Positions 4,934 to 59,258 are shown, counted from the first letter of the stretch. The stretch is 64,000 bases of DNA from Eutreptiella sp. 'Long Island Sound 2002' (GCA_964036045.1 OZ038378.1:162750001-162814000), one strand, 5' to 3'. Numbers and translations: made by a program. The notes: generated by a model not told the origin, from the sequence alone.

Positions 4934-5036
4934 ATGGGGATCTCGAACTTCTTATTTATTGGCGTCGGATTGCTCTTATCGGTCTCTTGTGCGTTGTTGT
5001 TGTTCATTTCTTCTACTTCGAGGACGGACAATGAAG
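4934..5036 (+). CDS. Exon 1: N-terminal signal anchor (MGISNFLFIGVGLLLSVSCALLLFISSTSRTDNE)
   Basis: ATG at 4934, a ~20-residue hydrophobic stretch, and a phase-1 donor GAAG|GTGTGC at 5037. Confidence 0.65.
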
Positions 5037-8000
5037 GTGTGCCCATCATTTTATTGTATTCACGGAACTCGGGAGGGGAGGGACGTCAATGACCTTTCGT
5101 TGGGTTGTGCCTTTCTGCACTAGAGATGGAGGAAGTCAAGCCAGCGTGTTGTGTTATCTTATGTTTGGTTTTATGTTGTGTCAAGTTGTGTTATGTTGTG
5201 GTGTGGTGCGGTTCAATTCACACAACGTAGAAGTGGGGGGGGGGGGGGCATTTTCCACCTTTGTGTTGGGTGCCTGTGTTCACATGTCTATTGCCCATCG
5301 ATGTACTAAGTTCATGTTGTTTGCTCACCTTATGCATTTCACTGGTCTTGGTGCCTTTTTTTCTTAGGGCCGCATGAAGATGAAGATGAATCTATGAAAC
5401 GGGCTACGATTCATCATGTAACCACAGGTTTGGGTGTGGGGCACGTGGGGGCATTCTTATCCACTTGGCCAACCACATAATGTCCCCGTGGATTTGCGGA
5501 TTTCTGCGATTTCCCCCTTGCGCCCTTTTTGTGTTCATTTTCATTTGTGTATTAATGTATTCTCGTGAAGCCACTTGGAAGGACTCGTCAATGGCGCATT
5601 AAGCGTGCAAGTATCAAACGTAGCATGCGAAGAAAACCAATGCGGCACACGCCCAATATGTGTCGATACGGCCCTGAGAGCTCGTTTGCACTTCGTTGTT
5701 GTGGTTTGGAAAAATTCACCAGCATTCGTTTTGTTGTTTGAGGTCGTCGACGGCGACGGTGGAGCGCACATCGGGGGGCAATTCCATCCATGACGACCAT
5801 CCACACACCCCCACCGTCACAAGAAGGGAGCGTCCGGGATCGTGACCTCAATTATCACGTCAATGGTACAACGGCACAAGAGGGGATTATCCGGTACCAT
5901 GACGTACAATATCACATCAATGGCAGCATTACTATTAATAGTAGTACAGACCATGCCGTGCTTATACCGGCGTATTATTGCTCGGCAACACCGTTTTGTG
6001 CAAAAATGGTGGGGAGGAGGCAATGTCACAAAGACTTTGGCCTTAATTCCACGGAACGCCCATTTGCCAAGTATGTATGCATGCATCCAGTGAATCGTAG
6101 GGCGTCTCCAACCGTCCGGTGGATTTGTTTTCCGTAGTATGGTCTCGGGAAGGAGCCATGCGCGCTTTGTTACCATTGAGGCCGCAACAAGGCGAATAGG
6201 TGTTGTTGACATTACATTTGGCGTGGGGTAGGGTGGAAGGGGGCCATCGCAAGATGCGCCTAACTGGTGGGAAACGAAACGTTGTGGAATGTGCAAGTGG
6301 TGGCTGTGCTTTTGCATGCTTGCACTGTCTTGCACCACCCTCATGTGCAGGTATGCAACTGGAATTCTCATTTGCAATTATTGGCGGTTGGTGTATAGTG
6401 TCTGGGTATCTGAATGTCTTCCTCGCCTAGCGGGGATGATCCAACGAATCAGGTTGCCTTCCAACTCCGCACGTCGTTGCTTCTCGAAGGCACAGATTGA
6501 TCCAATCGCTGCGATCACGGAGTCCCGCACAAGGCACATATAGCACGAGCAATTGGTGCACGGCAGGGCGATTTCACCACAAGAGCGAGACAGCTTTTGG
6601 CCCCTGGGTGAGGCCTTGCCACTCACCCCTTGCACAACTTTTGATGGACCCCATGCCGCATGCACCAGTAGAAGCCTCAGCCCTAGAGTAACTGGAAAGC
6701 TTTGAATCAATGGTCAATGAGGTGGGTGAAGGGGACAAGGGTGCATTCTGAAACTACTCCCACCGGCATGCAAGCATGCGGCAGTCAAGGGATCAGCTTG
6801 TGTGAGGCTGTCGTCTAGTTCTTACAATTTCATATGGTGGCACAAGTGACAGTAAGAGAGGGCGCGGGCCCCTCCGGTGGTGCCACCACGCCGAAGCCTT
6901 CTGGGGTGCGCTACCACTCTTTCAATCCGTGCCTGTGCTTCCCGCTGCTGGTGTCGCCAGAGGCCAAGGATGGATCCAGTACAGAATCTGTATCAGCTTG
7001 GGCACCCGGGACAGGATCCTGTTCAGCAGCAGCAATTCATCAAGGAGATTCTGGACTGTGATATGCCAATTATTTATAAATACCTGCAGCCGTCCTTCAG
7101 GGAATTTCGGCTCGCCGTGAATACGGTGTTTGCCCGTGATCAAGCCGCTTCTGTTTGCATTATCTATCCACATATTCGTGTGTAACCCCTGGTAGCTCAC
7201 CCCGCCGTTCCGCGTGTCACGATATCTGCGCGAAGATGACGTGTGGCTACTTATCTCCCGTTTTGGAAATCAACAGTCCTTCGACAGCCCTCCCTGTCCC
7301 CAACATGCGCGCTGTGCCGCAATACTTGACTTCTCCAAGCACCACAGCCGGGTTCCAACATTCTGCAATACAAGGGGAGCAGTTGCCAACCTTTCCTTTC
7401 GTGTGCTTTTTTTTTTTTAGCCCCCTTTGAGGTTTTGGACAGCATGGCTGTTGTGTCATCGGTGCGCTTGCGGGCGAAGCACCGTTCCCCGTTTCGTACT
7501 TGGTCTTTTAGGGCATTGGTGGAACAATACAATGCGTACATCATTGTGCCTGGGTTATATTATGCGTATCAGGTACTTTCGTTTGCGGTGGGGTGTGTCC
7601 CCAAGGGTGTCCCTCTTTCTGTGTCTCCGTCGCCGAGCACTGCGCCTGTGCATGTCCCCGTTTTGGGCGATTCCCGTCCGGGCGTGTGTGCACGCATTGT
7701 GTGTGTCCCCAATGGCGCGCGTGTGCTTCTTCGGTTGCAGCTGCGTACAGCCTTCTGTGGCACTGGTAAGGAGCCACGGGTTAAGGGTTGCAGTCTTTCT
7801 CAGTCTGGCACCTGTGCTGTGTTGAATGTTGCTGTCGAACTGCGCTTTTCATGAATCGATCCGCTCGGGAGCATCACACTCATTGGATCTCCTCCTGCTT
7901 TCCTCCTCTGGAGATTCTGTCTGGCCAAACGACCGTTGGGTGTGTCATTTGCAATCTTTTGTGTGCAGTATTTGGTGGAGGTCTTTGATATGCCGGAGCG

Positions 8001-11000
8001 GCAGTTGCTGGTGATGCCCCTGCTCGCGGGGCTGGAGACATACAGCCCCACTCGAGCCAAGGTATCGGTCGCCACTGGCAGCTAAGTGCTGTGTGCGTCC
8101 CTGTTTTATGGGAGGTGTCGTTGAATGCAACAAGAAAGCAATGATGTGCGACAGCCGTAATCCCAGCTTTATCCGAGGACTTGTGCTTGGACTACTCCGT
8201 CGACATGCCAAAACCGCTTGGTGCCTAGGAATCTGGGACTCTCTGGTTTTGGGGCGTTCTTTGCAGTTCCACCGTGCGTGTTGGGGTCCTCGTCTCGAGG
8301 TCATACTGGGCATCTATCGCCTTTGATAATCAAGGGATGCTCCCGGCATGGCTGCGGGTAGAGGGGGCGGGCGGCGCGTTGGTTGATCAGGTTTGCCAGC
8401 AAGGCGTTGGTGAAATTGGCGTAAGTGATCAGGTTTGCCACTACAATGCCACGGGGATCCACACACCCAATTTTCAAAGTGGAAGACGCGTCCGCGCAGT
8501 GTCCAACCCGAGAGGTGCCTGCATGCATTTTTGGGGTGTGTTGCATCATTTCACGCGTGGGCCAGGCTGCAATGCATGCGTGGGATCGTCGTGGCGTGTT
8601 CGATGGGTTGGAGCGGAGAAATCAGGACAATCGGTCACCAATGAACACGGTCTGCATCCACCAAAGCCTGCAACGAAGACGAGGGCGCACATGGGTTGGG
8701 AGGTGCAGCGGTTGGGGTTCTGTTGATCATGGCGTGTCTCTCAACCTTAGAAGCCATGGCCGCATCTACTTGAAGCCCCGCGCCCGCGCCATTATACCCA
8801 TCCCCCCTTTCCCCCAGACGCCGACCCTTGCCACAGAGTGACCCCTCGTCAGCTAAAACTAAATTGCCTCGTTTCGTTATCTCTTTCGACGTTCTCCCCG
8901 ATTTTCCTGCACAAGCTGTTACCATTTTGGTGACCAGGGTCCTTCCATTGTTGCGGTGCTTCGACAAGGGGCCCAAGAGGCACCACTCCATCTTTCAGGC
9001 AGCCCATTATTTGTGGCACGGTGGTTATTTCATTCCAGTGAAGGCTGTCAGCATCCATTTCCAGACGCTCTTCCAGCTGGACCACGTTCCGTGTGACGCT
9101 GCAGCAGTCGGGGCCCGGCTGCGGCTGCTGCAGAATATTCTTCCAGGTGCAACGCTCAACACAACAATAAGCATCACCACGAGGGCATGTAACCAGATGT
9201 GAATCACCTCGCAGAGTTTGTGAGATCCAAACCACGCGGGCCGCCATCTTTGGGAAAACGCCACATGCCCCTTTTGGGGGCCCAAAAATTGCAAATCTTT
9301 TGGGTGGTTTCGATTGTGAGCCAAAGAAAATGTTTTTCTGTCCCAATGGGGCTTGGTGAGGTGCGGGTGCAGTTTTTGTTATGACAGTGCGTTGGGGGGT
9401 CGTAGTGAACCTGTGGTGCCACCCTGCAGAGGGGTCGGATTGGGGATGTTGTGACAGTACACCCATGCGGACGTGTTTCGCAGCCTCTTGCCCCACCGAG
9501 GGCCGGTCATGACCTGATTGAAAGGTGCGAAATCATTATTTCCACTGAAAATAGCCTGCATGCATTTTTTCTGGCGACCCCTGGCGACCCCCTGTGGCTC
9601 TTTGCTCCATGCCTGGATCATCATTTGGTGACAACGGGAGTACATATGCACCCAAGGGGAGCCATGTAGCACCAATAAGACTCTCATAATCCTGATTTTT
9701 GGCCCCTAAAAGTGCTGTTCTGGGCTCTTTTCCAATCTGCGGGGCAAAATTCGTTTGCAGGCCAAACAGTGATTTCCGGCTTTCAAGCAGGCCATCACCG
9801 CCCCCAGGCGAGGCTGGAGGCTGCAAAACACGTCATTTTGCATCCGAACAGACAACATCCCCAATCACAGGGTCACTAGAGCTCCCAAAGTGATAACAAA
9901 AATGACTGAAAGCTGCATAAACTGCAGGAGCGCTCACCGAATTCCGCCTCGCCAAGCCCCATGAGGTTGGGACCCGAAACAATTTTTTGGCTCATAATCG
10001 AGAAAAATTAAAAGATTTGCGATTTTCATCCTTTTTTGGGGGGGGTCAAAAAGGGGGGCTTTTTTTAACATTTCTTTACCTCCTCCCCCCCTTAAAAGTG
10101 CGTTTTGGTGGTGGTGGGGCTATGGTCTCAGGGGTCCCAACCAAAAAATTGGTGTTTTTTTTTGCAAGGGTTGACCACGAAATGGCGGTTTTTTCAGGAA
10201 CGTCTGATAAATGCCGGGTTGCAGTGAGCCAGGGTTGGGTCATCATTTGGTGACAATGGGTGCACATGTGACCCATGAGAACCGTGTAGCACCAATTGGG
10301 CCCCCTCCGTGGTGCCTATTGCTAGATAAAAGGGTCCCTTTGGGCTATCTTGCACCATGGTGGGCATTTGGTTGGCCTATTGTGGCCATTTCAATCTGGA
10401 CGCTGCTCCCATTCCACTTTTCTCTTGTATATGGACCCCCTCGCCAATGGTGGGGCCCCGGGTTCCCTCTCTGAGTTCCCTTGATCGCCCCCGCCCCCTT
10501 TGGCCCCCACTGGTGTGGATTTTGCCGTTTTCAGGCCAGCATGGGTCGGTGCCCTCCGATACCTGCTGGGTGGACTTGGGCTCGGCTTGGGTCACCATTT
10601 GGTGACAATGGGTGCACATAAAAACCTGTGGGGGGGCATGTAGCACGAAGTAGGCCCTCCTAGTGGTGCTTATTGGCCCCTAAAAGTGCCGTTTTGGGCG
10701 TTTTGGCACCATGGTGGGCCAATTTGGTTGGCCTACTGTAGCCACTATCTGTTCATCCTGACTGAGGTTCCATTCAACTTTTTTTCTTGTCTGTGTAGCC
10801 CCTAGCCAAGAGAGAGGTCCCAAGGTCTATCTCTGGATACCACAGCCCTCCTCTTGGGCCCCTTTCTTTGGGGGGGGGTTTGACCATTTTCAGGCTGGCA
10901 TTGGTTGGCTGAGTATCGCAATTTTTGTGTGACCTCTGATGAACGCTGGGTTGCGTAGGATCAGGCTTTGGTTATCATTTGACGACAATGTGAGCAAACT

Positions 11001-14000: not shown

Positions 14001-15094
14001 TGTTGCTTGTCAGCTAGATTTAAGGGGGAAGGGGAGTAGCAATATATTGGGGGTGCTTGTGGGGGGGTCAGGGTACCCCCCCCCCCAATTTTGAGGGTGG
14101 CGCTTTCAACCAAAAAATAGCATTTGGAAAGATTTAGATGTGTCTGGGTTTTGGGGCCTACAAAGGGGTTGGAAGGGTTAAAAATCGGGCATGACATCCC
14201 CAATGATACGATCCCACCCAAACTGCTAAAACTAGGCACTTTACCCCCCAAAATAGCCCATCCCTACCTTTAACCCCCCCTAAGCCACAAAAGTTCCAAA
14301 CCTTTTCCTTCCGTTTGCCCATTTTCATCCCTGATGGTCACGTTTAGGGAACAATAATGTCTCATGTCACCAAGTTTGTCCCTCAGTTGCCTCTTTTTAG
14401 GAGTCTAGATAGGAGTCTATCATCAGTGATGTCATGCCCTATTTTTAGCCCTTCCAATCCCTTTGTAGGCCCCAAAATCCACCCCCACCCGTCTAAATAC
14501 CTTCCAAAACATGTTTTTTTTGAGTTCCCCGCCCTCAAAATAGGGGGGTGGGTGTCCTTATTTCCCATTGAGGAACCACCCAATAGTAGGGGGTGGGGGG
14601 GGCAGAGAGTACACTATCACCTATGTTTATATACAGGCAGCCATGTAGTACCAATCTGGCCCAGCTATTGGGGTCCATGTGCCCGTGAAAGCTGTTTTCA
14701 AGCTAGATCAGCCTTTTTGGATAAATGGAGCTGCAAAACTCTACGGCCACGTTATGGGGCATTGTTAGAGGCAATTCTCTGTGAGGGAGGGTTGCTGAAT
14801 GCAAAGGGGGGTGTTGAAAAAAGTCAAAATGCCCCTCCCCCCCCTATCCATCTGGGCCCAAAATTGCATTTTCCTTTCAACTTTGAGCTGCAAAGGCATT
14901 CTTGGGTCCCAGCTGCATCGGGTTTGGTGAGGGTGGGTGTGATGAGCACTGCTGTAGTTCATGCTCAGGGTCACCTCAGGGTCCCCTCACCACGCACATA
15001 CTGTTCCGCTGGTGTGGGCCGTCAGGCACCATGGGATGTCTAGCGGCGGCGTTGCTTGGCCGCATCTCCTCCTACTCCTCCTCTTCCTCCCATG

Positions 15095-15133
<39 letters not shown>

Positions 15134-15749: not shown

Positions 15750-15784
<35 letters not shown>

Positions 15785-18700
15785 CACGGACTGTGCAGCA
15801 CGGATGACCAGGGAGACCACACAGTGGGTGTTGTGCTCCCAGAACAGTGCCACACACCCAGAACACCCAGTGCATTCCTCAGCTAGTGGTGCTCTTCTCC
15901 CTGTGCCATTTGTGCAGATCGTCCACAGCAGTCGAAACGTTTCAGAGTGACGTATGCAGAGACAATTGACCTCCTGATGCCCATTAATCACAGTATCGGC
16001 CTCAAGCAATTGCATGTCGCAGTGCCCCACATGGAAATTGTGTCCGTAAGATTGGATCATTTGCCAGTGAAGCAGCAAATTGAGCTTCTGGCAGACACAG
16101 GTTTGTGCCAGCACCCCCCCCCCCACCCACCACCATGTGTTTGTGAAGAATCAGGGGCCACATTTCCGCATGGTGTAGTTCCAAGTGCCTCCACACTCCG
16201 GACCACATTTGTGGATTGGGCTGTGGCTCGGTTGGAGCCCCACACCCCGACATGCAAACCCCCTTCAGTATTGCAACCTTTGTGATCGCACACATATCAT
16301 GCCCTGAGTGTTGTCCCTTTGTGACGAAGCAGGGGCCACGTGTCCCCAATCTGTCACATAGCAGGGACCAAACTTCCACACAATGTGTGAGGAGCAGGGA
16401 CCAAACTTCCACACAATGTGTGAGGAGCAGGGGCCACACTCCACACAATGTGTGAGGAGCAGGGGCCACACTCCACACAATGTGTGAGGAGCAGGGGCCA
16501 CACTCCACACAATGCGTGAGGTGGCAGGGGCCACACTCCACACAATGTGTGAGGAGCAGGGGCCACACTCCACACAATGTGTGAGGTGGCAGGAATCACA
16601 TTTCCGCACCATGTGCGAGGTGGCAGGGAACACGTTTCCACGCAATGTGTATGGGGACAATGCCAAACAGTGTGTGAGGGAGGGAGGAGGAACAATGCCA
16701 CACAATGTGTGAGGGAGCAGCGACCACACTTCCATGCAATGTCTGAGGGAGTCTGAGGGAGCAGGGACAATGCGTTGGTGCATTTTCCTGCTTACCCCAC
16801 CCCCTACCCCAGGGCTTCTTTAGAATAATTAAAAACCAAGGGGGGGGGAGCCCTCCCCCAAAACCCCCTCCTCCCCTCCCCCCCCCCTGCTCAAAAGAAG
16901 CCCTGCCCTATCCCCAACCTCATCCTACTTTTTGCGTTTTCTGGTTCTTTAGTAGACAAAGGCCTAAGTTGTATCTTGCTTCTATCCACTCCCTGAGCAG
17001 TACTTATTTCCTTTCTCCACCTCTCAGTTCCAAGTCCCCTCGTGTTTTTAGGCAGAATGGTTTCTAACACTGAATTTGAATCGGATGGCACCAATTCATT
17101 TAGCCCTGACAAGAAGCCGCAGTGTGTGTTTGGGCAAAGGTGGGGCTGGTGCCAAGCATCGCACCATGTTGGTGAACTCGACTGTGGCACATTTTCCAAA
17201 CAAACCCCTCTAGGAACACGAGAACTGGCAAAACAACCCATTTGTGTCGTGTTCCTCAGGTAGGGAGCCTGTGGTACACCAAACAAAGAGTTTTGTGGAC
17301 ACACATCTCGGTAGAAGGTGCCATTATTGAAGGCAAGGGTCCTTTGACTCGTGGGGGCTGTGGTCTGCCGACCCAAGCCCAGTGCCTAGAGCCTTCGGTG
17401 ACACGGCCTGTGATGCTCTTGTTCTCTGCACCGCAATCAATGTTGCCGCAGATGTCCTCGTGGCCCCCAAAGGGGACCCTCTGTACAGTCTGGTGCATTT
17501 GCGCGAGGGGGCAACGGTGATCGAGGCCATTAGCCGCCCGTACCCGTACTACAACGAGACGTTAGTGTTCCTGGATCCCGCCGCGCTGTGCCGTGCTCTG
17601 GGTCTAAAGTACAGGCAATACTTTCTGACGCACGTTGGGCAGGCCTGGGAGCAGCCAGCACCGAATGCCACCCATCTCGCGCTTCTCCTGGAGGAGGCGT
17701 ATACCTCACACAAGGTCTCCCTTTTCCTCCAGTCTGCTGTTTCCAAGGGGCTCCAACCGCCCGATCCGTCCGCCTCACGACATCACTGAGCAACCCCAGG
17801 GGCAATGCAGGGGTCTCATAAACCATCCCCATCCAACCTCTTGACCCCCCCACCTCTTCATGCAGCAGACGCTTGCGGGGCTGCAGGGGGACTGAGCTGC
17901 AGGGAGAATGGAAATGTGTGCTTCCAGGGCCAGATTTCTTTGCATGTCTGCTTCACCCAGAGTTTTCGCCGGTGTCCGAGAATGTCTGCAGTGCCCGTGA
18001 GTTTCTGCCTCAAGTTTCTCCCCTTCGGGTACTGACCAAGATTCAGCACCACCAGCGGAGGAGACATGCCCCCCCCCCCCCCGCTAGAATGTTGGGGTTT
18101 ACCAGGGTGCCGGACAAAGCTGACCTGAGGGAGGGTCGCAGGGAGGCTAGAGCATGATATGCCGTGCATTGCACGGTATCATGTGGCGTTGTGCTCAGCA
18201 GGGCGGACATGCACCGATGCTTTGCCACATTTCTGTTAGACTTCGCCATTTGTGCAATGGCTCGAATGGCTTATGGCCTCCCACCTTCAAGTAGTCAGGA
18301 AACCATTGCCCATCACCTTCGGCTCAATCCCAAATTAAAGCGCAAACCAAATCAAATCAGTTCAAAGAAATTGTGATCTGCGGTCGGGCTCATCCAGCTT
18401 TCATCCACCCGCACCCTCTCCCCATGCCCCGTGTGCCACCAACCGATGATCAGAGACGTCAGATGCGGGAAAGGACCGCATGTCATTTCAAGTACTGGTG
18501 CGCATGCAACATCGCAACGCAAGCCCATCGCAAACGGCAGGGGATGGCAGGAGGACTCAACAGCAAGGCACAGCACACCCAACACCCTGGGCTTCTGTTG
18601 TGTGAACCTTTTTTTTGATGGAGGTTTGGTTCAGTGTTCGCGGCAATGCACTATCAGAACAAAAACTCTTGCAAGCCAATGGACTTAGCAGCTGTGGGCT

Positions 18701-21700
18701 GAAGGCAGATTAGGAGCTGTGGGCAGGCTGTTGTAGTACATCTGTGAGTCCAATGCCCTGGTACATGCTATTCTTGAAAATGATGAATTTAATGAGGAGA
18801 ATGCTGATCAGGATATCATGCGTTTGTATGGGGACGTTAGGAACAACAATGCCATGCCCCCCCACAGAAAGTTGAGCTGATTGAGTCTGTATCAGATTCT
18901 GATGTAGAGTTGCAAGATGTGGAATCTGAGTTACTGGAACACGTGGAATCAGAAGCACTATCCAAACTAGCGTGTAGCAACAAAAGCAGGTCACACAACA
19001 GACATGGCACTGGACACCTCGATGGGTACCGCCCGGCACTGAGCAGCCTTGCGCTTGGAATTCCGCTTCCCTCCTCCCTTCCTGAGTTGCAGAGTGTGGT
19101 ACACTCAGGCGGGGGAGACAGTCTCGGTAGGCAGGCTTTCCCCTGAGTTGGGCCTTGGTTTGGATTTGGGCTGCAATGGAGCCCTTCAGAGGTAGATTGC
19201 GTTTTAGACCCTGAGTGGCTAGCGCAGCTAAGGATCACCAATGCCATTTGAAGTCTCTGAAGAACTTGCCTGCAAAAAAATCTGAGCACAACGGAATGTC
19301 GCGCAAAGTGGGTGCACAACTAAGGTCACGTATGGAACTTGAAGTCTTCAAAGAAGTTGCAGGCAAAATCAGATCACAACTACTCACCATCTGGAATGTC
19401 ATGCCAGGTGGGTGCACAACGTAGTTGATGACATCCATGGAATGTAGAGTGTGGCCTTGTTTGTGAAATTATGAAAGATGGCCAGAAACGACTGGGGACC
19501 GATGTGCCTGTGGACATAACTACTGCAAGAAATAGCACAGTGACTAAATTTGGCCTCCGAAAGAAGAGCCTAATTCCAATAGGGGTGGTTGGACACTGGC
19601 GCTCTAACCCCCCACCCCCCCTTTTCGGAGAAGTTTTCCTCCGGCCTCGGAAGAGCCATGTCCCACCAGGCCTTGGGAACAATTCTTGGTTCCTAATGCT
19701 ATTTGAAAAACAAGCTGTACTGCTGCACCCTTGTCTTTTGGTACATGCAGAGGGTTGTCGAGCACCGTGGTGCGTTGTGCGGTGTCCTTGCGAGCCACGC
19801 AAACAGGGCATGTGTTGCACAAGGAAGCAAGCACATGGCTACCAAAACCACTGCTCAAAACAAACTTCTGCCGGAGACCGCATCCCTTCGGTGCACAAGA
19901 TGGGGAACAGCAAATGGTCCGCTGTCCATGGTAACATGTGTGCCTGTCACGTGTAAGCGCGGCATTGTCTAAGCAGAGGATCCCTGTCTGCCCCTAGTTT
20001 CCGCTGACCAGGGCTGTGCAAGGGGGCATCGGACTCATTGACCATGGCCATCTCTCTGCCAGAGACTCACAGATAGACCCAAACGACTTGCTTTTTCCAG
20101 GGGCATCGGCAAGACAACTCCCAAGCAGCGCCTGTGCGATTTTTGTCGCCGCAGACTCTTGGGTGTGAAGGCGTCAAGCTGTGGTCCACGCCCATCAAAT
20201 TCGGAGGTTGGGGGGATGGCCATTCCAAAAATGGCTGGTGGAAACGCGTCTGGATCGTGAGCCCAGGCGTGGCCAAGGTCCCGTTCAGGTGTGCATGTGC
20301 TTTCATGACCCCTCAAGTGGGTCGCGTGCGCATTGTTTTCGAACGGCCGAGGCTGCTCGACCCCATTTCGGGAGGGGTTTGGGCGTGTCCTCCAGCACTG
20401 GCAAGAAAGTCCGTCCGAGACCAACCCCCCTCCACGGGGGGGGGGGGGCGGCCGGGCTCGGTCCTTGTATGCGACCCCCCCCCCCCCCCCGAGTTTTGAA
20501 AGATAGCGGTGCAGGGGCCATGGCGCCAACGGCGCCAACTTTTTTGTTGCATGCTTAATTGAAGGGGGTACTATGCCTTTAGTCCTTAAGACCCTTAAGA
20601 CTTTCTTCCTGGCAAAGACGAGAAATCGCTCTCATCGCATACATGACCCCCCCCCCCCCCCACAAGTTTTGACAGATAGCTGGGCGGTGGGTCGCATCAG
20701 GACCGTGCCCCCCTTCCCCCCTCCCCCGTGCATGCCTGGACATGCAGCGCACCGCTGATGGGCAACACCTGGTGATCTGGAACCCCCTGGCCCTGTAGGC
20801 ACTGTGCGCGTCCATAGTAGTGGAGAGCAGCCTTCGGATTTCGCGGTGATGAGAACGATTGCATGTGACGCCTGCCGGTGGATCCCCTTTCCTGAGTTGC
20901 GGAGTGTGGCGGACTCAGGCGGGGCTGACGGTCTCGGTAGGCAGGCTTTCCCCAGAGTTGGGCCCTCGTTTGGATTTTGGCCGCAGTCGAGCTTCTCGGG
21001 CCCGAAGCGAAACTTTCTCTTCAGTTGCTTATGCTGTAGTGCTGCCTGGTGCCAGTCATACAGCACCAATTCTGATTCGGAAGAGTCTGCTGGAGGGCTG
21101 CATAGACCAAATCCTCGGAACAAATTTGCCATAGCAATGGAATCGCCGTGCGCCACTGTGTGGGCAAACGCCGAGCTGCCACCCACTGGTAGCACTCGTC
21201 CTCGGAGCGGCTGCCCGGGCGAGTGATAGTGCTCCAGTACGATACTAATGCCCAAGCAATGCCCTCCTGGACCAATGTTTTTTTGTTTTAAATTGTCCGC
21301 AGGGCCAAGTTTTAACTGGCAGCTCATGGCCCCCCGGTCGGTTGCGTGTTGAGTTATTGTATCAAGCTTTGGTGGCCAAAAATCTGCGGTTGGGGTGCGG
21401 TAGGGTAAGCCCCCAAAAGGAAGGAATGCCAAGGAAGGCGACTGCAGCGCCTTACAAAACGGGCGGTCCCATGACCCGGAGTGGCAAGGTATGGTCCATG
21501 GTACTGCCCCAAAGTGTCCCGCGTGTTGGTGATGCCAGGGGTACCCCGGGCCATTCGCACACACCCCCTCCCAGGCGTTCGCGAGCCCTGTCACGCCCAC
21601 CCTGAGGCCCATTGCGACGAGCCAACCCCCCATCCAACCCAGGCACGGCTCGGTTGTGCCAGTGTTCCCGTTGCAAGCGATGCGTACCGCTTTCGATTCC

Positions 21701-24700
21701 CCATCCGCACGAACACTGACGCACGATCTGGTGCCATGGTGTCCGTCCCGACCATGACTCGATCGGAAGCATCGGCCGGACCAATGTTATTGCTACGCCG
21801 CCGGATGCAATGAGTGCCCCAGTCTGCAAGCGCAACGGCCTGTAGGTGTCCATTCTGGTTCGTGTTTCCAATGGAGATAGGCTGAGAGCCACGCCTCCTC
21901 CTCCTCCTCCTCCTCCTCCTCCTCCTCCTCTTCCTCCTCCTTTGCAAGCCTGTTTTGGTGCAGACGTGGCAAGGCCACCATACCCGCCCTGCCCTGCATT
22001 GTATTGCACGACCAGAAGGCATTACAGCCCCCATCCGTTGCGGATGTCCGTCCTCGTGCATGCGCAACCCCCAAAGGCCCGTGCTGCCGCCTGCTCGGCT
22101 CCATTCGTATTAGGATTGGGTGGTCACCATAAAAGTGGTTGCCACTCAACATGCCGGGAGTGAGCCTTGGGAGGGGTGGTATCAAAAGGGTCAAATAAGA
22201 TGGGCGCAACGTAGACTGCACACGCATACCCTACACACACCCAACAATCCTTCCACATGCCATCCTCCCGTGTAAACCCCGCGACCCGCAGCCCTGCCCG
22301 ACACCCGCTCCCCTGTCCAGGGCCAGCAGCAGCTATTGGGTTCGCATGTGGCGTGAAATCGAGGCAATCCGCAACTTTACAAACCCTTTCACCGCGAAAC
22401 TGCTCGGGTTGTGCAGTGACAGTGTACGGAACAAGTACCTGTTCATGCAGGAGTCGCTGCCGGGGGATATGGATGTATGTTTCTGCTACGCGCAGTGCTG
22501 GTCTTCCAGTTTTCCGGTCAGCATGTTGTTGCTGATGCAGACGTCCCTGCTGCAGCTGCTCGTTTGATGGTTGTTGCCTGACGCTTGGCATAGCCCTCGC
22601 ACATGCCAATGCCCAAGCTAAGCTGGCAGCTTGACCCAGCAAGGCCCACAGGTGTTGGGTTTAGGCGAAGCGGAGGAGGGCGTCGCAACACACTTCGGGA
22701 CGTCTGATAGAGCAGGCATCTCCCGCTGACTGTACCCTCCGTTCACACACCCCAAGGCCCCGTCCTCCCCCTAATTTTCAGGGAGCCAGGAGGCTCTGCA
22801 GACTGCACACGAGCCACAAAGCAGCTTGCATGAGGTGTTCTCACAGCTTTTCGAACCTGAGCATTCATGCCTTGAATGATTTGGAGCGTGTTGGCGATCA
22901 GTTGTGCATTGTGGGTTGCCCTCCCCTGAAGGCCCCATGAGACCAGACCACCCTACCCAGCAGGGTGCCAAGGGAGACGGGTATGGAAGCCGAAACCTGG
23001 ATTCACCCAAGGTCAAATGGTGTGATAGAAGCCTTGCCGCACCACCCAACGCAGCTGGCAGTGCCAAACTCAGGGGGTGCAACCGGTGCGGACTTCTGGG
23101 GCGAGCATGAGAACAGGTCAATCATGCGTACATGCGGGGGAAACAGTAAATGATGGGCACCTGCTCGACAGAGTGATCTGCCTATGACTCGAAATGGAGA
23201 CGTGCAGACTACAATTTTTGATACTGTTTAGGGCTTACGGAATGCAATGTGCGGTACTGGGCAAGAACTTGGAGAGACGTTGGTGCATATGCAAGATGTT
23301 GTGCCACCGGAAGAAGGGGTTCTTCACAGGACCAGCTGGCCAATGGGCCTATTGGCACGCACAGCTGTCACCATGGCACCAGCTTCTGTGTTTTATGCCA
23401 ATGTTACTCTGCACGTTTGAGTTGTGCAAGTGGTCTAGCACAACGCCGGAGAGCATTTTTGGTCTGGGTAACCCACAGCTTTGTCCAACGACCACCCGCT
23501 GGTCGCTATAAAATGTCTAACGACCGAGGGGAAGTGGCGTAATGCGGCGAAACATCGTTGGCCGTTGCGCGAGAGAGGGGGCGGGGGGGGGGATGCATCT
23601 CGCCCGTCTGCAACCCCAACCCCCGAACCCGATACGGCTATCGTTTGGCCATAGGTACCTATCGTTCGGCCATGGGTACCTATCGTTCGGCCATGGGTAC
23701 CTATCATTTGGGCATAGTTACCTAGCCTTTGGGCATAGGTACCTATCCTTTGGGCATAGGTACCTGTCCTTTGGGCATAGGTACCTATCGTTGGGCCAGA
23801 GGTACGTATTGTTTCGGCATCGATAACTATCGTTTGGGCACAGGTACCTATCGTGTGGCCATAGGTACCTATCATTTGGGCATAGTTACCTATCGTTTGT
23901 GCATAGGTACCTATCGTTTGGGCATAGGTACCTATCGTTTGGGCATAGGTACCTATTGTTTGGGCATAGGGTAGGGTTTATGTATCCTCGCCGCCTTGGG
24001 GACCCTCAAACGGCAGGGGTGATGCGGCCATGTATCTTGAAACAATGCCAAAACATGCACAACACCCAAGCACAAGACAGACATGTGACAGGGTCGTTCC
24101 AGTGTCCTCCACAGCTATGCCAAATCCAAGGCACCAAGTGCGCGAGCAACAGCCAAGACAATGTTTGGGCTCCAGTTTTGGGCTCCAGTTTTGGGCTCCA
24201 GACCCCCCCCCCCTTGAGGAGATCTGTGGGCGCAGGTTTTGGTTGACCTTTTCCCCATAGGCTCTTCCCGCGCCTCACTGCTGCATTCCGCTCCTCTCCC
24301 TTCCTGGCCGCGCTCTTCAGGCCCTTACAAACAACACCTTTGTAAATGCACTGTCTGGCTATCTGCATCTTTGGCCAACTCAAAAGCAGGTACCTATCTC
24401 TCATGTATTGAAGTGAAGTGACCAAGCACCTCGGAGGACACCTTGGATCCGCCCCCCCCCAGCCAGGGATGCATTGGAAGGGGGGGGGTACCCCCCCCCC
24501 CCCCTCGAGGGCGCCCAGTCTATGCCCAGCTGGTGTCTCCCTGACGCCGAGTGCCGGCTTCAATGGCATTTGTAGCCGACAGTATCCGCCCCCAACCGCT
24601 TTGGCAGCCTTCTCCAATCGCCTGTGTGACCGCGTCTATGGCCGCCTCTGAGGCCCCTTCCCTTCTAATGCATCCCTGCCCCCAGCCCCCGTCGCCTTGC

Positions 24701-27700: not shown

Positions 27701-27723
27701 TGTTGTTGTTGTTGTTGTTGTAG

Positions 27724-27757
<34 letters not shown>

Positions 27758-27836
27758 GTTGTTGTTGTTGTCATTGTTGTTGTTGTTGTTGTTGTGTTGT
27801 TTTTGTTGTTGTTGTTGTTTTTGTTGTTGTTGTTGT

Positions 27837-27914
<78 letters not shown>

Positions 27915-27947
27915 GTTTATTGTTGTTGTTGTTGTTGTTGTTGTTGG

Positions 27948-28025
<78 letters not shown>

Positions 28026-45719: not shown

Positions 45720-48700
45720 CAGTTTGGACATCGAAACTATTTCGTCAAAGTTTTAGCTATCCAGGGTGTCTCTACCGTTGAAGTTATGAGGAAAGTATTT
45801 TATGGCGACAACCCTTCACTGCTTATGGTGCATTTGTAGGACAAAGTTGAGGCCTTGTTCAAAGCCATTGATTAGCTTGTGACCCTATTGACTACCTTGG
45901 GGGACCTGGACATTCTTTTGTATAAGGAGGCGACTGCCGTAGAGCTGACCGAGTTCCTCACTACGGCGGGTTCCTTGAAGGATGCCTTCCCGGTTATGCC
46001 ATACCAGGTGTGGCAGATGGATAGATTAATCAGCTCTAGCTCAAAGGGCAAAGCATATTCTGTCTGGCTATTGTGCACAAGTTTCAAGTCACGCAGCGAG
46101 TGCCGTTGTATCGCATGGTTCGGCTTCGTTTGCCCGGAGAGAGCTAAGAAGGGATCCTTTTTCGTGCGCCAGAAATCAAATACCCCATGATAGTGGTGCG
46201 GTACGCAATGGGCTGGGAACCAGAGCCGCTAGACACGCTGGGCCTCAAACGGGAACATGCAGTCATATGTCCTGGCTGTAATGCTGCCCATTCGAAGTTT
46301 TGGTGTGTCGAAGTCGATTTTGAGACCACGTCGCGGCTAGTTACGACTTTCGGCCGTTACCCGCATTTTGCTCTCTTGCCTCTGCGCTGGTACACGGGCC
46401 AGGAGGTAGACACAGTGGAGGTGCGACTCGAAGTGACGATGAAGCGGTCTTTTTGGGACATGCACATGCAATTCTTTTACGTGTACGTTTTGGGGACCCT
46501 GTGGGAACTAGGAGAGGTGTTCACCTCCGGGAGCTTACATATTATGCACTCCAAACACATACGAGTGGGCCTTAAAAAATATTGCCTCTCATTTGTGGAG
46601 AAGAATATGGAGCATTGGCTGGTGACGATGGGGCTAGAGATTCGCGATGAATAAACAGGTAAACCCCTCACAGGGGGTGGCTCAGAGGTCACCACACAAG
46701 CCTCAAATCTGCCGGAACCGTGGGGTTGTTGCTCGTCTGTGTTCCCCACCAACGTCCCACCCTGTTGGAAAGAGGAATTAGTGCTGACCGTTCTCTTGAC
46801 ACAAGGTACTAGCCAATGTGATTTTGTGGTGGATAAGTGCCGATTTGGTATTGGCGACATTCGATCCAAGACTTGGATGGTAACAAGCTCCAAGGTTAAA
46901 GACGTCCGGGGGAACATCTTTCATACAACATCCACAGGCACTTTCATAGTGGCCGTTTGGCAACAAGAATATCGGTCTAAGGGAGCCAGGACCCGTCCAA
47001 GGGCAAGGGACGAGGCAAGGGACGTGGGACGGGCACGGGGGGCCGCGGGCCGCCACCAAAGCCGACCCCGATGGAGATCAGCACCGGCACTCAAGTTCAT
47101 GAAACGGAAACGTCCTGGCTCGTAGCCTTCGGTCTGCTACAAAAATGGCCGTCCAAGAGGATGGCCTTCACAACGATAAACGCCAATGGTTGGTTTGCCC
47201 GACCAAAGGCATCATCGCAATCTTGTACCCAGCCGCAAGCATCGAGGGCTTCCTCGACACAGCAGCAATATCACGTCTTCAAATGTTTGAAAAGGCACAA
47301 GGCCGATATTGCGGGATCATTAAAGTGCAGGAAACGCACTTTAAACATGAGGCCACCGTGCGCAACCAACGGTGGTGATTACAACGATAGGGGTGCAATA
47401 TGTTAGCAACAACACAAGCAAGAACGGCCCGCGGATCATCGGCGGTCCTATGGAAAACAGACGAATGGGCAGTAGTAGCCTCCAAAATACTGTCCCTGTG
47501 TCTCATTTTAATGCATTTCCAGCATTCTGATGGAGGAGAGGTGGTGGTCTTATTGGGGCACATGGAGTGCGAGCTAGGAGCTCGGAAAAAATAGTGGGGC
47601 GTGGTACAGGACGAGCTGGCGTCCAAACAAGGACTACCCCTGGTCACGCTTCTCGATCACAACAACAGTATGGTCCCGGGGGTCGATTCAGCGGACATTC
47701 CTAGAGAGCTGCCGGCGACAGTGAAGGCCTGGGAGCGAGAGGCCTTGGCGCTGGCCGAATCCGAGTTGGAAGATGTGTGGGTGCACCTGCATGGGGAACA
47801 CCGCGATGACTCCGTGAGCGGGTTCACGTTTCCGTCCCTGCAACACAGAATAGATCGGGTGCACTTGTCGGCGGCCCTCCACCCTTTCGTGCGGTCAACA
47901 TACACAATGTGTATATCATCAGACCACCTAGCAGTGGCTTTGCATGTAGGTCCCCCGGAGGAACCGGGCCTGCCGGTGCGATACAGGTGTCCTATGGATA
48001 TGCTCGCTTGAGAAGATGGAGTGGCCAGTTTGGAAGGGGTGCTGGACGGATGGCATCAATCTCTTTTGCCAGCAGATGAATGGCGGAGTGGGGTACATAA
48101 AGCAGTTCGAGCGGTAGGGGGAGCGTTGGCCACTGAAACGCCCTCAGACAGGGTGCACGCATCTGGATGTCCGAGTGCTTGAAAGCACTATCCATCGGCT
48201 GGCAGCGGGTGCAACAGACTTTTTGGAGGAACGAGGTTTGGTTTGTGGTTCGGTCCAGCAATCATGTCAACAGTTGGTGCAGCTCCGTGATTAGGCTCGG
48301 GAGGACAAGTTTCGCTCGGCCGAGTTGGTTTGTTTGCGGCGGTAGCTGCTTTCAAGAGATAAGCGAGCGGCTTTGAAGCGGGATTGCCAGCAGCGTATCC
48401 ACGATCTAGTGCGCCACTTGAAAGAGCGGAAACACATGTCATCTCTATGGGACTCAGCAGGGTTGATGGGTGATGCATGGCGGCCCCAAGAAAGTGGCCG
48501 CCCTTCTCGACGAGTATTGGTTAGGGGTCATGTCGGGGGGCGAGGGGGGGGGGGGGGCTACGTAGGGGGACTATGACAAGTACGTCCGCAGTACAGTCCG
48601 CAGGACTATTTCACTGATGAAGTGTATCCCTAAATTTTCCGAGGCAGCACACGCTCGGGACATGCGGCCCATAGCTTTGCAAAACACGGTGATGGAATGG

Positions 48701-51540
48701 CTCTCCACAGTGGTCCTAGTCCAACCCAAGGATGTGTTTGCCCATATAATCCCCACCTCCCAAAAAGGCTTAATGCGAGGACGGAACATGTGGTATCCGC
48801 GCCCCAACCAGAGCAAGTAATGGTTGCGCCGGACTTCCAAAAAGCCTACGATTCGTTTTCCTTTCAATTTCTGATGGTGGCGTTGAGCTGCATACACCTG
48901 CCGGCACCATATGTCTCACTACTACTCTCTATCATAGAGGGCCCAATCTTGTTTTGCGTAGGGAGGCGCTTTGAGCCAGGGGTAGAGCTTCGGCCTCGCT
49001 CAAGAATCCGGCAAGGGGATCCCCTTTCCCCCCTCTTGTTTAATGTGGTCACCATTTTTCTGATTTATGATTTTGGGAGACTGCGCTGTGATTTCTGGGT
49101 ACCGTTTTACGTAGACGATATTCTAATATGCCTCCCAGGGTGCACGAGGTCACATGAAAAAGAGCTGCAAGCCCTCTTGTGCGTATTAAACATTTTTGGG
49201 TTCTACTCAACCTTCAGATTGAAATACAACCAAACTTTTGTGGTGGTGAAAAGGCCAGAGGGACTGCCACAACCAGGGTCTGTGGCTGGCATCACAGTGA
49301 AGCCGCGGGTCAAATATCGGGGGGTTTTGCTTGGGAATGTTTCGGGACAACAAGCCTATGGGCCGGTGATAGCGAAAATGATGGGAAGGGCCAAGACTCT
49401 GTCCAGCCTACCACTGGGTATGGAAGAGAAGACCAATCTCTTTTGCGACGTAGATTGCACCTGTTTTGTAGTCAACAGTGCGGGCCCACGAGCCCACGGA
49501 CAAGGTCTTGTCCCAACTGAATTTGATACAGCGCGTGGCCCTCGGGTTGAATTTTTGGCACCTCCCAGCGGGTATCTTGAGCATGCCCAAAAGGGAGGGG
49601 AGGGTGGCGCATGCCCCCTTGCCGTCCTACGCCCTGTGGGTACACTCCCACTTGGTCGTCACAGCGGTATGCCACCCACATGTTTATGACGCGTCCCATG
49701 TGGAAAAATTTCAACGCTGAGCGGGGCGGGTCGGCATGGTGCTCAATGAAGTGACCTTATATCCAACTCGCGCCGGTTAACATCAAAAACCCTCCTTCCT
49801 GCAAGGAGCACTGAGAGCATACTTGTGGGGACGGAGAGGGGGGGGTTAGCCCCCCCCCCGCCGCAACTGCTACCCCAAAAGGGCATCTAGCATTCAATAT
49901 TTTTTAGGGGAGATACAGGGTTGACGTATGTGTGCTCTCGACTAGTGAGAAAAGGTGTCTTGCGATGGCGGGTTTTAGTAGTGGCGGGCGTGGTACATTT
50001 GGAGCATTTGGACGTCATCGCATACACATACAAAATGGCGTATGACATGGGAGTCCACAATGTTTGCTTACAGTACATGTGCCCAGATGATGGGGCACGA
50101 GGTCTTGCCTTGCACTGATGGGGGGCGGGCTGGGGGGGGGGGGGGGGGCAGCGCACGCTGCTCTACATGCAACTCAGCAAAGCAGAGTCCACGGCAAACG
50201 CCCGGAGTCCGCTTATATTTGCCACAATGGGATGTGGATTTCATCGGACGAGTATTGTGGAAAAAACTACCCATTGGGGGACGGATGGGCCACCGCGTGG
50301 GTAATAAGCTATGGCCCTTGTGTCAAAGGCTAGAGGACCACGAGCACATGCTTCGGCATTGCAGGTTTTCGGCGTTTTTTTTTAATACCGTCCACAAGGC
50401 ATTTGGTGTAGTGCAAAGGGAGGGGGGCGAGGTAGAGCCCGGCAGACTATTGTTTGAGGAGCTAGCACTGTTGCTTCAGAGCACTCAAGGTTTGGTGTTG
50501 TGGGCAACGCTCAAGGCGCAGTAGGCTCTGCGTTGTGAAGCAAGATTTCAGGGGGGGGGGCACCCGTCCCTGGATGATTTTGTGGCGCGCTAGATGGGGA
50601 TCCTGGAAGTATGGCGCGCGGAACTGAATATGTCGCTCTCCCACCCTGACCTAGCACCTTGTGGATCAACTGTTTCTATGGTTTGGTGGGGGCATGTTCC
50701 AAAAAAAGTACCGACACCAGGAGTCTTTCCCAAAAAGATGAGCGTGAAGCCTTCGGACTTCAAGGACCAAAAATAAGGCCAATATCGGGACGGGGTGGTC
50801 AAATGGTTACAGGTGTTAGAGGCCGAACATTTGACGTTGGTGTATGCCAATGGATCAGCGAAGCAAGTCATGGGATGGTGGCAGGCGGGGTATGGGGCCT
50901 GGTTCGGAGAGACACACGAGCAGAATGTGCGGTTGCCCGTCCGGGTCATTGAGAGATAGAGTGTGAGCAGAGGGGAGCTTCGCGAAGTTCTATACGCTCT
51001 GCAACGTCGGCGGGCAGCGGAAAAAATGGTAGTAGTGTTGGACTCAGAGTATGTGTACAAGAGGATCACTGAGTGGTCCCCCAAGTGGCACCGCCACTCT
51101 TGGAGGGTGAAGTCACGGGAGGTGGGTCACCGAGACCTGTGGGAGGGCATTTTTCAATTGCGGCATGACGCAGGGGCCCTGCTGAAGTTCATCTGGACGC
51201 CGTCCCATATGTGGGTAGAGGGGGGAACGATAAAGCCGATGAGTTGGCGGAGACTGGCACAGAGGTGCATCCCAACAACAAAAGACGGAAGGGGGACACT
51301 GACCGCGTGCCACGCTTGTGGCACGATGCGGGCTTGTCTCCGATGCGCACGGATATGCCGTCCTCCGAATCATCAGGGGACGGCTCTGGTGTGTTAAGCT
51401 CAAGAGCCAGCGTGTGGGGGGAACTGTCTTCGGCCGCTGACATGACGGGGACCCCATCTTCATTTGGGAGCTCGTGCGAAGAGGGGAGCTCTCACAGTGA
51501 GGGGTCTAGGTTCAGCACAGATGTGAGTGAGTGACAAAGG
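45720..51540 (+). mobile_element. Degenerate near-full-length LINE (ORF1 remnants + APE + RT + zf-RVT + RNase H)
   Basis: APE: TINANG, VQETH, LLDHN, RIDRVHLS, SDHLAV (47160-47950). RT: RPIALQN, DFQKAYD, RQGDPLSPLLF, FYVDD (48617-49400). zf-like: LWKKLP...LC...EDHEHMLRHC. RNase H: YANGS...AGYGAWFG, RGEL, LDSEYV, HRDLW, WTPSH, KADELA (50830-51270). Many stops and frameshifts; boundaries approximate. Confidence 0.9.
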
Positions 51541-54207: not shown

Positions 54208-54741
54208 ATGGCCCTCCTCTTGCACCTCCTCGGGAGCATCGTCCTCCAGACCCTGCTTTTTGCCGGTGCGCCCAGTGTCTTGTCCAGGCCGACCTGGACG
54301 TCTGGCTCCAGGCCCCCTGCGGAGTTGGTGTGGGCCAACTTCACTCGGGACTATGGAGACTGGCTCGGCACCCAGCAGTACTGCATGGAGTGGTGCAGTG
54401 CGGATGGAGGCGCCGAACCCTCCAACATTTTCCGCGATTTCGACGCTGGCTCCCCGGCGTGGCGGCGCGCCAGCGCCCTGCCCCCGTACCAGGGCCAGTA
54501 CCAGAACAGCACGGCCCGCCTGTTCAATCGGACCTGCTGCCACGTGTGCACGCAGGACTGCTTTGCCACACTGCGCGACAGCCGCAGAGTCGAGGACACC
54601 GCGGACGTGACCCTCGCGACGGTGGTCACGTTGGAGCGGTTCGGGACGGTCTGGCAGATGCGGAAGGTCTGGTCGGGGCCGATGGTGATGCTGGTGTACC
54701 ACGTGGAGATCGCCAACGGGACCAACGCCAACGCGCTGGAG
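54208..54741 (+). CDS. GT49 paralogue copy B, exon 1
   Basis: Colinear with copy A: WANFTR..DW...QQYC..WC, ALPPY.G..QN.TAR.FNRTCCHVCTQ.CF, TADVTLATVVT.ER, QMRKVWSGPMV. Donor GAG|GTGTGC at 54742. Confidence 0.9.
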
Positions 54742-57700: not shown

Positions 57701-58127
57701 GATCCGCGCAGGCCTCCCCCCCCACCCCCCCCCCCCCCCTCCCAGCCGGGGGTCTTCGTGATGACCGCATCCCGGGCACTGATCAGGCCGTCAGGGGAGG
57801 ACGCCATGGGCAGAGGTTGCATTCTGGATTCCCCCCCCCAAGGGCAGGGGGATGCCCGCAGCAGTGCGGATGCCTGCAGTAGTACGCATGCCTGCTTGTC
57901 ATAGCAGAAGGTTCAAGGGCGAGAAGCCACAGGTCAACAGAGCTAACCACCAATGCCTTGTGCCAAACCCCCCCCACCCTTCCGCCAACCCCCCCCCCCC
58001 CCCCAACTGCCCCCCCGCCCCCAAGTTTTGACAGATAGCCGGGAAGTGGGTCGCATCAGGACCAGCTGTAGGCCCCCCCCGTGCCTGCACTCCCGGATGC
58101 TGCCTGCGTGTAACCCACTACTCTCAG

Positions 58128-59197
58128 GTCTCCAGAGCGCGGAAGGCGCTGCAGACTGCATTGGCGGAATGGCCCCAGACGCTGGTGCTGGAGTACGTGC
58201 ACCGTGCGCGCTGGCAGCTGCCGCTCCTGCCCATTAACGCGCTGCGCAACGCGGCCCTGGACCACGCGCGCACGCGCTACCTCTTCCCGGTGGACGCCGA
58301 CTTCCTCCCATCGGTTGGGCTGCACGCCGCGCTGCGGAGCGCCGCGCACGGCATTCTGAGCAAGGGTGCGCACGCGCTCGTCGTGCCGCATTTCGAGGTC
58401 GCAGAGTGCAACCACCCGACAGGGGCGCAGCGGTTGCGGACAGCAGAATATCCGGACACTTTGGCGAGGCTCACCGCGCTTCTGAGGCAGGGGGTGGTGC
58501 GGCCGTTCCACGCCGAGACGTCGGAGATCCTGCGGCACATCGCGGGGGTCCCTAAGCATTACGGGTGCCCGAAGGAAGTGAAGCCGCTCGTGAACAACGC
58601 GGAGGGCGTCAAGGTCACGCGGTATGACGTGTGGTACAACGCGAGCCGTGTGCTCGAAGGCGTCCCGCCGGAGATACCATCTGAGCTGTTGAACGCGACC
58701 AAACTGTTCCACAGCTACGCCAAGCTCGTCGGTGGGCTGGGCAGGGACGCGCAGTGGCTGAAGCTCAAGATCTCTGACACGGAGCGCCTGTGTGACAAGG
58801 CCGTCACCATTTATCTCGACCGGTGGGAGCCGTACCTGTGCTTCGGTCGCGTGTCCGCGTGGGGGCTGGTGGTGCGCTACAACGAACTGCTCGTGGGGCG
58901 CTTCTACAACAAAGTCCAGCTCGTTTCGGCGCTGAGGGCCAAGCGCTTCCGCTTCTACACGCTGCTGCGGCACTTCCTGGTGCACAAGACGCACAGGCCG
59001 TCCCGCTGGCAGCAGAAGCTGGACACAGATTTCGCAATGACCATGCGGCTGCTGGTGGACAGCAGCTTGAGGGACGTTAGCCCCGCCCACCCCGGCTGCG
59101 ATGTTCCGAACTTGCGACGGGTTGCGCAAGGTCTGCCCCCCAAGCCCCGGTTCACAAAGCCACTTACACGTGCGAACATGATTGCGAGGCAGCTGGC

Positions 59198-59242
<45 letters not shown>

Positions 59243-59258
59243 ACAACAGCAACGTTAA
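58128..59258 (+). CDS. GT49 paralogue copy B, exon 2, ending in an 18-Gln tract
   Basis: Acceptor ctactctcag| at 58127. VSRARKALQTALAEWPQT aligns without gaps to copy A VATARQQIRTLVAKWPQT. The spliced product is 554 aa; stop TAA at 59256-59258. Confidence 0.9.

Follow-up and report, generated by a model that had tools for sequence, protein, structure and literature searches.

The window analyzed here, 64,000 nucleotides (64 kb) of eukaryotic DNA from Eutreptiella sp. 'Long Island Sound 2002' (GCA_964036045.1 OZ038378.1:162750001-162814000), carries two genes of glycosyltransferase family GT49 on its + strand, and these are old tandem paralogues. Upstream of them on the same strand lies a long gene, predicted to have many small exons, which, to judge from its sequence features, probably holds a divergent C-terminal half resembling glycosyltransferase family GT61. 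An earlier note had described the span 4934-59258 (54.3 kb) as a cluster of a GT61 enzyme, a secretory kinase and two GT49 enzymes that resembles the animal pathway for matriglycan. The explanation that we favor, with some confidence, is plainer: tandem GT49 duplicates would stand beside a single glycan enzyme gene that is unrelated to them by descent, in an ordinary gene neighborhood.

The GT49 pair

GT49-1 (35055..36725, + strand) is intronless; its product is a single-domain GT49 protein that has a signal or anchor and keeps its DxD motif (VDADF) intact. GT49-2 is split into two exons on the same strand: exon 1 (54208..54741), located by tblastn with GT49-1 at 53% identity, encodes the Cys-rich N-terminal region together with a signal or anchor, and exon 2 (58128..59258), 63% identical to GT49-1, encodes the GT49 catalytic domain with its DxD and a poly-Q tail at the end. 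Between the two exons lies a canonical 3.4-kb GT-AG intron (GAG/GTGTGC ... CTCTCAG/GTC) that follows ...NANALE. Both open reading frames (ORFs) match the family profile PF13896 above its cut-off of 27 bits, with 92.9 bits (E 3.2e-26) for ORF 34962-36722 of GT49-1 and 77.5 bits (E 1.5e-21) for ORF 58032-59255, which covers exon 2 of GT49-2. The DxD is kept in both copies, its D234 and D236 being invariant in an alignment of 10 sequences. The N-terminal hydrophobic 19-mers have a mean Kyte-Doolittle hydropathy of 2.23 in GT49-1 and 2.04 in GT49-2, and each protein would consist of an anchor, a Cys-rich stem and a GT-A catalytic domain. A 560-residue protein called on a 1.6-Mb metagenome-assembly contig in ENA (P0001), whose gene calls are all of prokaryote style, is the GT49-1 product but for one residue. 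The family matches, the paralogy and the DxD show that the two GT49 genes of the earlier note are real. Opposite exon 2 of GT49-2, a 405-codon open frame with a poly-Leu end runs along the - strand (58059-59273); it is most likely a by-product of a coding strand rich in G+C at third codon positions, and it may be the reason why public gene calls lack GT49-2.

The two proteins share 59% amino-acid identity, with a nonsynonymous divergence (dN) of 0.33 and a synonymous divergence (dS) of 0.68, which indicates that the duplication is old and that both copies look constrained. In a small tree the window genes are sisters (Shimodaira-Hasegawa-like approximate likelihood-ratio test, SH-aLRT, 99). 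Their nearest neighbors in this tree are P0002, P0005 and P0006, single-domain GT49 proteins encoded on compact protist contigs, and LARGE2 falls outside; the phylogeny thus tells against the animal parallel. Intron content differs between the paralogues (zero in GT49-1, one in GT49-2), and the sequence upstream of the copy without an intron showed no spliced-leader relic. The 17.5 kb that separate them contain the remnant of a retroelement without long terminal repeats (a long interspersed nuclear element, LINE; 46148..51394, +) with RVT_1 (48634-49686), zf-RVT (49982-50521) and RNase H (50960-51394) domains. It is not part of any pathway and would have inserted between the two genes after the duplication. 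When P0001 was used to scan metagenomes no relatives were returned, and a second scan gave five short contigs whose flanks were not useful. Distant GT49 relatives include two Logan proteins, P0009 and P0010, in one of which GT49 is fused to a caspase-type Peptidase_C14 domain (PF00656), whereas the other has PF18404 together with GT49.

An AlphaFold model of the GT49-1 protein (P0001; predicted template modeling score, pTM, 0.71) was matched by Foldseek to the GT49 domains of LARGE1/2, then to B4GAT1 and then to Dictyostelium gnt12-15. LARGE1/2 is the best match in structure (E about 3e-20, 19-22% identity, probability 1.00) and also in sequence, where P0001 matches the LARGE1 GT49 domain in PDB at E 6.5e-12 with the DxD motifs aligned (VDADF vs SDIDF); PF13896 and a luminal type II topology are further points of likeness. 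The window proteins differ from LARGE in having no N-terminal GT8 xylosyltransferase domain and in their extra Cys-rich N-terminal region. No window ORF scanned matched the GT8 family (PF01501) and P0001 carries PF13896 only, whereas the LARGE2 matches in the protein search carry both PF01501 and PF13896. Without the GT8 half, the window GT49 proteins cannot alone polymerize xylose and glucuronic acid (Xyl-GlcA) in the fashion of LARGE, and GT49-1 was rejected as a LARGE orthologue for the same reason. B4GAT1 resembles them as a single-domain GT49 with an N-terminal anchor, and its Foldseek match extends over nearly the whole protein (E about 5e-16, probability 1.00), but the identity is lower (15-17%) and the acceptor of B4GAT1 in animals is ribitol-phosphate-linked xylose. 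By this model, the window proteins appear only somewhat nearer in structure to the LARGE GT49 domain than to B4GAT1.

GT49 is also found far from animal dystroglycan. Dictyostelium gnt12-gnt15 and the GT49-like proteins of algae, including those of unknown function in green and red algae, are non-animal members without a dystroglycan context (PMC3797821), and P0002, P0005 and P0006 are of this kind. Choanoflagellates already have all the matriglycan enzymes (PMC8478517). The presence of GT49 outside animals therefore makes, by itself, no link to dystroglycan-type glycans. The protist relatives sit in compact genomes among unrelated neighbors, whereas in the window GT49 is duplicated and adjoins a GT61-like gene. 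To our knowledge, the characterized GT49 enzymes are solely B4GAT1 and the C-terminal domain of LARGE. By analogy with these, the window enzymes would most likely add glucuronic acid in beta linkage, or a related sugar, to a luminal glycan, with a uridine diphosphate (UDP)-sugar as donor.

The GT61-like region of the upstream gene

The upstream gene was modeled by codon-usage scoring (log-likelihood ratio, LLR, from a non-circular table trained solely on the GT49 and DUF1963 ORFs) and by exon chaining. Strong + strand codon-score segments with acceptable GT-AG borders between 4.9 and 30 kb are found at 7969-8061, 9065-9146, 17452-17714, 22321-22474, 27149-27370 and 29644-29879, and the GT-AG chaining models are unstable beyond six or seven strong exons. 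A putative and tentative exon 1 (4934..5036, +) begins at an ATG and includes a hydrophobic anchor of 23 residues (MGISNFLFIGVGLLLSVSCALLLFISS...) with a mean hydropathy of 2.71 over 19 residues; its combined score for coding and donor is negative. Taken with the GT49 proteins, all three proposed N-termini thus carry 19-residue stretches with a mean hydropathy of 2.0-2.7, in agreement with the anchors or signals claimed by the earlier note. Two tentative GT61-like exons follow on the + strand, one at 7969..8061 (YLVEVFDMPERQLLVMPLLAGLETYSPTRAK; codon LLR 11.6), which codon and splice scoring selected whatever the intron penalty, and one at 9065..9146 (TLFQLDHVPCDAAAVGARLRLLQNILP; codon LLR 8.8), which comes from exon chaining. 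Beyond an intron of 8.3 kb lies the GT61-like exon 17452..17714 (+; DVLVAPKGDPLYSLVHLREGATVIEA...; codon LLR 28.5), predicted to encode the end of the nucleotide-sugar-binding half. The 8.3-kb intron contains a foldback with 611-nt arms (11712-12322 and 13399-14009) that are 100% complementary, and further inverted repeats are nested in the stretch that separates the arms.

Transcription of exon 17452-17714 is shown by an estuary metatranscriptome. One run contained 86% of the sampled words of this exon, and a 236-nt contig, which has 0 mismatches to 17479-17714, stops precisely at the AAG/GT donor with no coverage past it, which is the outcome expected of a splice at the predicted donor.

The likeness of this exon to GT61 comes from an Atlas language-model search (query 17454-17714), in which 95 of the 100 named neighbors carry PF04577, with a best score of 0.94, 207/256 features in common and a recognition of 2553; by these features the exon lies among the PF04577 clusters. 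Read by eye, the exon shows the pattern D-h-h-h-G-x-[HK]-G-x-x-L...E and an apparent GT61 terminal helix, and its strand-loop DVLVAPKGDPL...GATVIEA stands at the place of the EOGT segment that holds H432 (PMC13123520). EOGT has His-Gly-Ala-Gly and the window exon Lys-Gly-Asp-Pro. In EOGT, UDP is bound by an N-R-R constellation plus an adjacent catalytic His (N245/H248, R372, R377; PMC13123520). Aligned by eye, an Arg in exon 7969-8061 is a candidate for the second of the Arg-Arg pair, being 54 residues before the Lys that aligns with H432, against 55 residues for R377 of EOGT. The other Arg position in the same exon reads Phe/Asp, so that one of the two UDP-binding Arg residues of the GT61 family is seen in the window. 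Upstream of the Arg exon, the motif N-x-x-H-x-[hydrophobic]-x-[DEN] is absent in every + frame, and an intron could split it. Two other candidates for N-x-x-H, 'ACMHFWGVLHHF' (ORF 8229-8723) and 'ENSLHAFF' (9550), were rejected because they lie 3' of the Arg exon and are not collinear.

Searches with the upstream gene (Pfam, PDB, phmmer and Atlas) were carried out with single exons or ORF pieces rather than with the spliced protein. Pfam scans of about 40 ORF and exon pieces of the window matched the two GT49 ORFs, DUF1963 and the LINE domains only, and no exon or ORF piece matched PF04577, even at E 10. In PDB, the GT61-like exon found no chain at E 10, with POMGNT2 (7E9J) and EOGT among the chains searched, and a phmmer search with 17394-17786 against 1.84 billion proteins returned its own ORF and the spurious repeat protein P0004 only. 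A word-index search of the exon likewise returned the exon itself, which forms a cluster alone, and the AlphaFold prediction for its 87 residues in isolation was unusable (predicted local distance difference test, pLDDT, 44). Thus, the GT61 assignment of the earlier note holds at the level of language-model neighbors, whereas single pieces gave no GT61 match at profile, PDB and phmmer level and the hallmark residues were not found intact; the likeness to POMGNT2 that it had drawn found no match among PDB chains. POMGNT2 is not known to have a kinase-like region after its GT61 domain.

The kinase-like exons and the one-gene question

Downstream of the GT61-like exon, four + strand segments were considered as possible parts of a kinase domain in the same gene. 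A doubtful candidate for the N-lobe exon (20155..20288; LGCEG...GVAKV) has a good acceptor and donor and a phase that fits both 17714 and 22321; its codon LLR is -3.5, and exon chaining favors 21575-21738 instead. Exon 22321..22474 (WREIEAIRNF...KLLGLC...YLFMQESLPGDMD; codon LLR 13.3; borders CCAG/G and GAT/GTATGT) reads, on its motifs, as alphaC through hinge, an alphaC-like Glu included. Exon 27149..27370 (codon LLR 30.3, the highest of the gene) encodes YGDAGAKN, 12 residues, DFD and then a Cys/Gly-rich tail, with the canonical Asp-to-Asn and Asn-to-Asp spacing. The last exon (29644..29879; codon LLR 15.4; stop codon 29877-29879) joins 27370 directly in phase, and a candidate bridging exon at 25953-26079 is the best of many.

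Repeats are frequent around these exons. Very high-copy repeats occupy 18065-19018 and 20349-20940 in the intron between the GT61-like and kinase-like exons, where the summed word depth of the contigs from a DNA run climbs from ~12-27 to 300-50,000 and many rearranged joints occur. Two minisatellites lie between the kinase-like exons, at 23638-23970 (21-nt units, 16 copies) and at 25000-25296 (24/48-nt units, 12 copies), the latter yielding proline- and threonine-rich repeat ORFs. Just 3' of the kinase-like exon 27149-27370, a (GTT)n microsatellite of about 600 bp (27648-28240, 199 copies, 89% matches) gives rise, on both strands, to long but artificial ORFs of poly-V, poly-L, poly-C and poly-N.

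We judge the odds that the upstream gene encodes a kinase fold to be about even, given that the reading comes from motifs. The order and spacing of the core elements (alphaC-like Glu, hinge-like segment, D-x4-N, 12 residues, DFD) fit a kinase in exons that were chosen by codon and splice scores, not by motif. The pattern of catalytic loop plus DFx occurs once in six frames, against a mean of 0.16 in shuffled sequences, and shuffling reproduced it in 16 cases out of 100. The stricter [HY]GD pattern was absent from the shuffles, though it was defined after the sequence had been seen. Pfam, PDB and Atlas did not recognize the single kinase-like exons: PDB searches with three of them, 22321-22474 and 29644-29879 included, gave nothing relevant at E 10, and the Atlas recognition of the pieces (1399-1728) is below the 2300 mark. 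The unfiltered Atlas neighbors of 27148-27369 are Cys-rich modules, other Atlas neighbors of the kinase-like exon look random, and the candidate beta3 Lys, with the proposed Gly-loop, lies in exon 20155-20288, which is not coding-like. The secretory kinase of the earlier note is thus a motif reading that no tool bears out. It is possible, at somewhat less than even odds, that the supposed kinase is another Cys-rich luminal or extracellular module or a separate gene (at 22.3, 27.1 and 29.6 kb), in which case gene 1 would be a gene for a divergent, perhaps catalytically degenerate GT61-like protein. The missing recognition, the frequency of the motif among shuffles, the non-coding score of the Gly-loop/Lys exon and the Cys-rich neighbors favor this alternative; the fit of the kinase core and the absence of the [HY]GD pattern from the shuffles count against it.

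Whatever its fold, the region was rejected as POMK, since the defining non-canonical active site is absent. In POMK, Ser replaces the beta3 Lys and Gly the alphaC Glu, the catalytic Asp belongs to an MCD motif whose Cys forms a disulfide with the activation segment, the catalytic loop is extended by five residues and has Gln for Asn (Asn171), and there is a DLD motif (PMC5142810, PMC3696010). The window exons, in contrast, have F-Y-G-D without the Cys, D-x4-N with Asn, and an alphaC-like Glu. The sole active-site feature shared with POMK is an acidic residue where the DFG motif has its Gly (DFD here, DLD in POMK). A more general likeness to POMK (SGK196) and the FAM69/PKDCC group would be a putative luminal kinase-like domain behind a membrane anchor.

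Whether the GT61-like and kinase-like exons belong to one gene is a related question. For one gene, the chain 17714 -> 20155-20288 -> 22321 is in phase with good splice sites, no ATG followed by a hydrophobic stretch was found between 17.8 and 22.3 kb outside the high-copy repeats, and exon 17452-17714 seems to be the last one of the GT61-like domain. Against it, an in-phase chain can nearly always be found when many candidate exons are available, and the metatranscriptome, compared with 17.0-22.9 kb, covers 17479-17714 and nothing on the downstream candidate exons. No splice joints were seen in the reads mapped to 17.0-22.9 kb, where only one run is RNA and the others DNA. A GT61-kinase fusion in one gene is plausible on the sequence, and the support for it is the phase consistency of the chain.

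The neighborhood and the matriglycan parallel

The arrangement itself was described correctly by the earlier note: the three genes are co-oriented within 55 kb, with every coding stretch detected in the window on the + strand. From the stop at 29879 to GT49-1 is 5.2 kb, and apart from the LINE no further coding signal was detected between the three genes. They would be three consecutive genes for enzymes of the secretory pathway lumen in a large, intron-rich protist genome: a long first gene in which, on its motifs, the end of a GT61-like domain is followed by a kinase-like pattern, and then the two GT49 genes. A common role in a xylose- or uronic-acid-containing surface glycan is possible.

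Resemblance to the matriglycan pathway holds at family level for GT49 and probably for GT61, and it breaks down at the absent POMK hallmarks, the missing GT8 domain and the missing linkage elsewhere. None of the three genes is orthologous to an animal matriglycan enzyme, and the parallel is an analogy at the level of families. None of the window ORFs scanned is POMT1/2, B3GALNT2, FKTN/FKRP or RXYLT1. At the loci of the three nearest GT49 relatives with flanking DNA (L002-L004), which are 29-35% identical and hence a weak test, no similarity to the GT61-like or kinase-like exons was found. The neighbors are an ABC transporter, GCFC and an aldo-keto reductase at L002 and UDPGT, a permease, SNF2 and XPD at L003, while L004 is too short to say much. 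The synteny proposed as a check is thus absent, in distant relatives only.

A working assembly line on the animal model, in which the GT61 enzyme would extend a sugar on a protein or glycan, the fused kinase phosphorylate it and the GT49 enzymes prime or extend an acidic chain on the product, as POMGNT2, POMK and B4GAT1/LARGE do, is in our view improbable. It would gain from the adjacency and shared orientation of the genes with only the LINE detected between them, from the Atlas result for the GT61-like exon, and from the phase-consistent chain without an independent hydrophobic ATG start. Elongation by animal LARGE1 depends on the POMK phosphate, according to work cited in PMC8478517. Sugar-1-phosphate transferase activity is present in the membranes of Euglena, and its cells release material with a GlcA-xylose epitope (PMC5745450), which is relevant only if the organism is Euglena-like. 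Speaking against such a line are the kinase that no tool recognizes and that has no POMK active site, the negative coding score of exon 20155-20288, a metatranscriptome that covers the GT61-like exon and no downstream candidate exon up to 22.9 kb, the lack of a GT8 xylosyltransferase and hence of a LARGE-type polymerase, the GT61 N-x-x-H and first Arg that were not found, and the absence of synteny in distant relatives. We give a similarly small chance to a counterpart independent of animals, in which a type II GT61-kinase fusion and the two GT49 genes would build a phosphorylated, uronic-acid surface glycan; the fusion would then serve as a 'Rosetta stone' that ties the GT61 step to the kinase step.

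That the genes are adjacent by chance, in a genome rich in secretory glycan enzymes, deserves considerably more weight, although we would put it somewhat below even. Since a single duplication accounts for the GT49 pair, what has to be explained comes down to one GT61-like gene beside one GT49 locus, and the cluster hypothesis was formed after the data were seen. Four protein searches with the GT49 and exon queries, however, found no further GT49 or GT61-like paralogues from the same assembly, and neither family looks expanded, which counts against chance adjacency. The same result weighs against the plain reading that we prefer, namely tandem GT49 duplicates beside one glycan enzyme gene of separate descent, and so do three other points. 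If these families are small in the genome, chance would hardly be expected to bring GT61-like, kinase-like and GT49 sequences together. Were GT61 and kinase fused in frame, glycosyl transfer and phosphorylation would seem to be functionally linked. Exon chaining was limited to GT-AG introns, so that, if the genome is euglenid, nonconventional introns would be missed, and the model of the upstream gene is incomplete in consequence.

It is worth considering what a fusion that works with the GT49 enzymes would mean. Its domain architecture would be new. It would indicate that animals were not the inventors of a coupling between glycosyl transfer, glycan phosphorylation and GT49 extension, and it would offer a way into euglenid surface glycans, which are poorly known. 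What is solid is ordinary, that is, duplicated GT49 genes beside a divergent GT61-like gene, and the main value of the present analysis is to keep the matriglycan label off this locus ahead of a transcript-based model.

The composition of the window ranges from 49-60% G+C, with 64%/45%/75% G+C at codon positions 1/2/3 of the coding regions, and intron lengths reach several kilobases. Dinoflagellate and Euglena spliced-leader sequences, used as queries, were not found in the window. At its left edge, a + strand ORF that enters from outside (window 2-1147) matches DUF1963 at E 1.1e-6.

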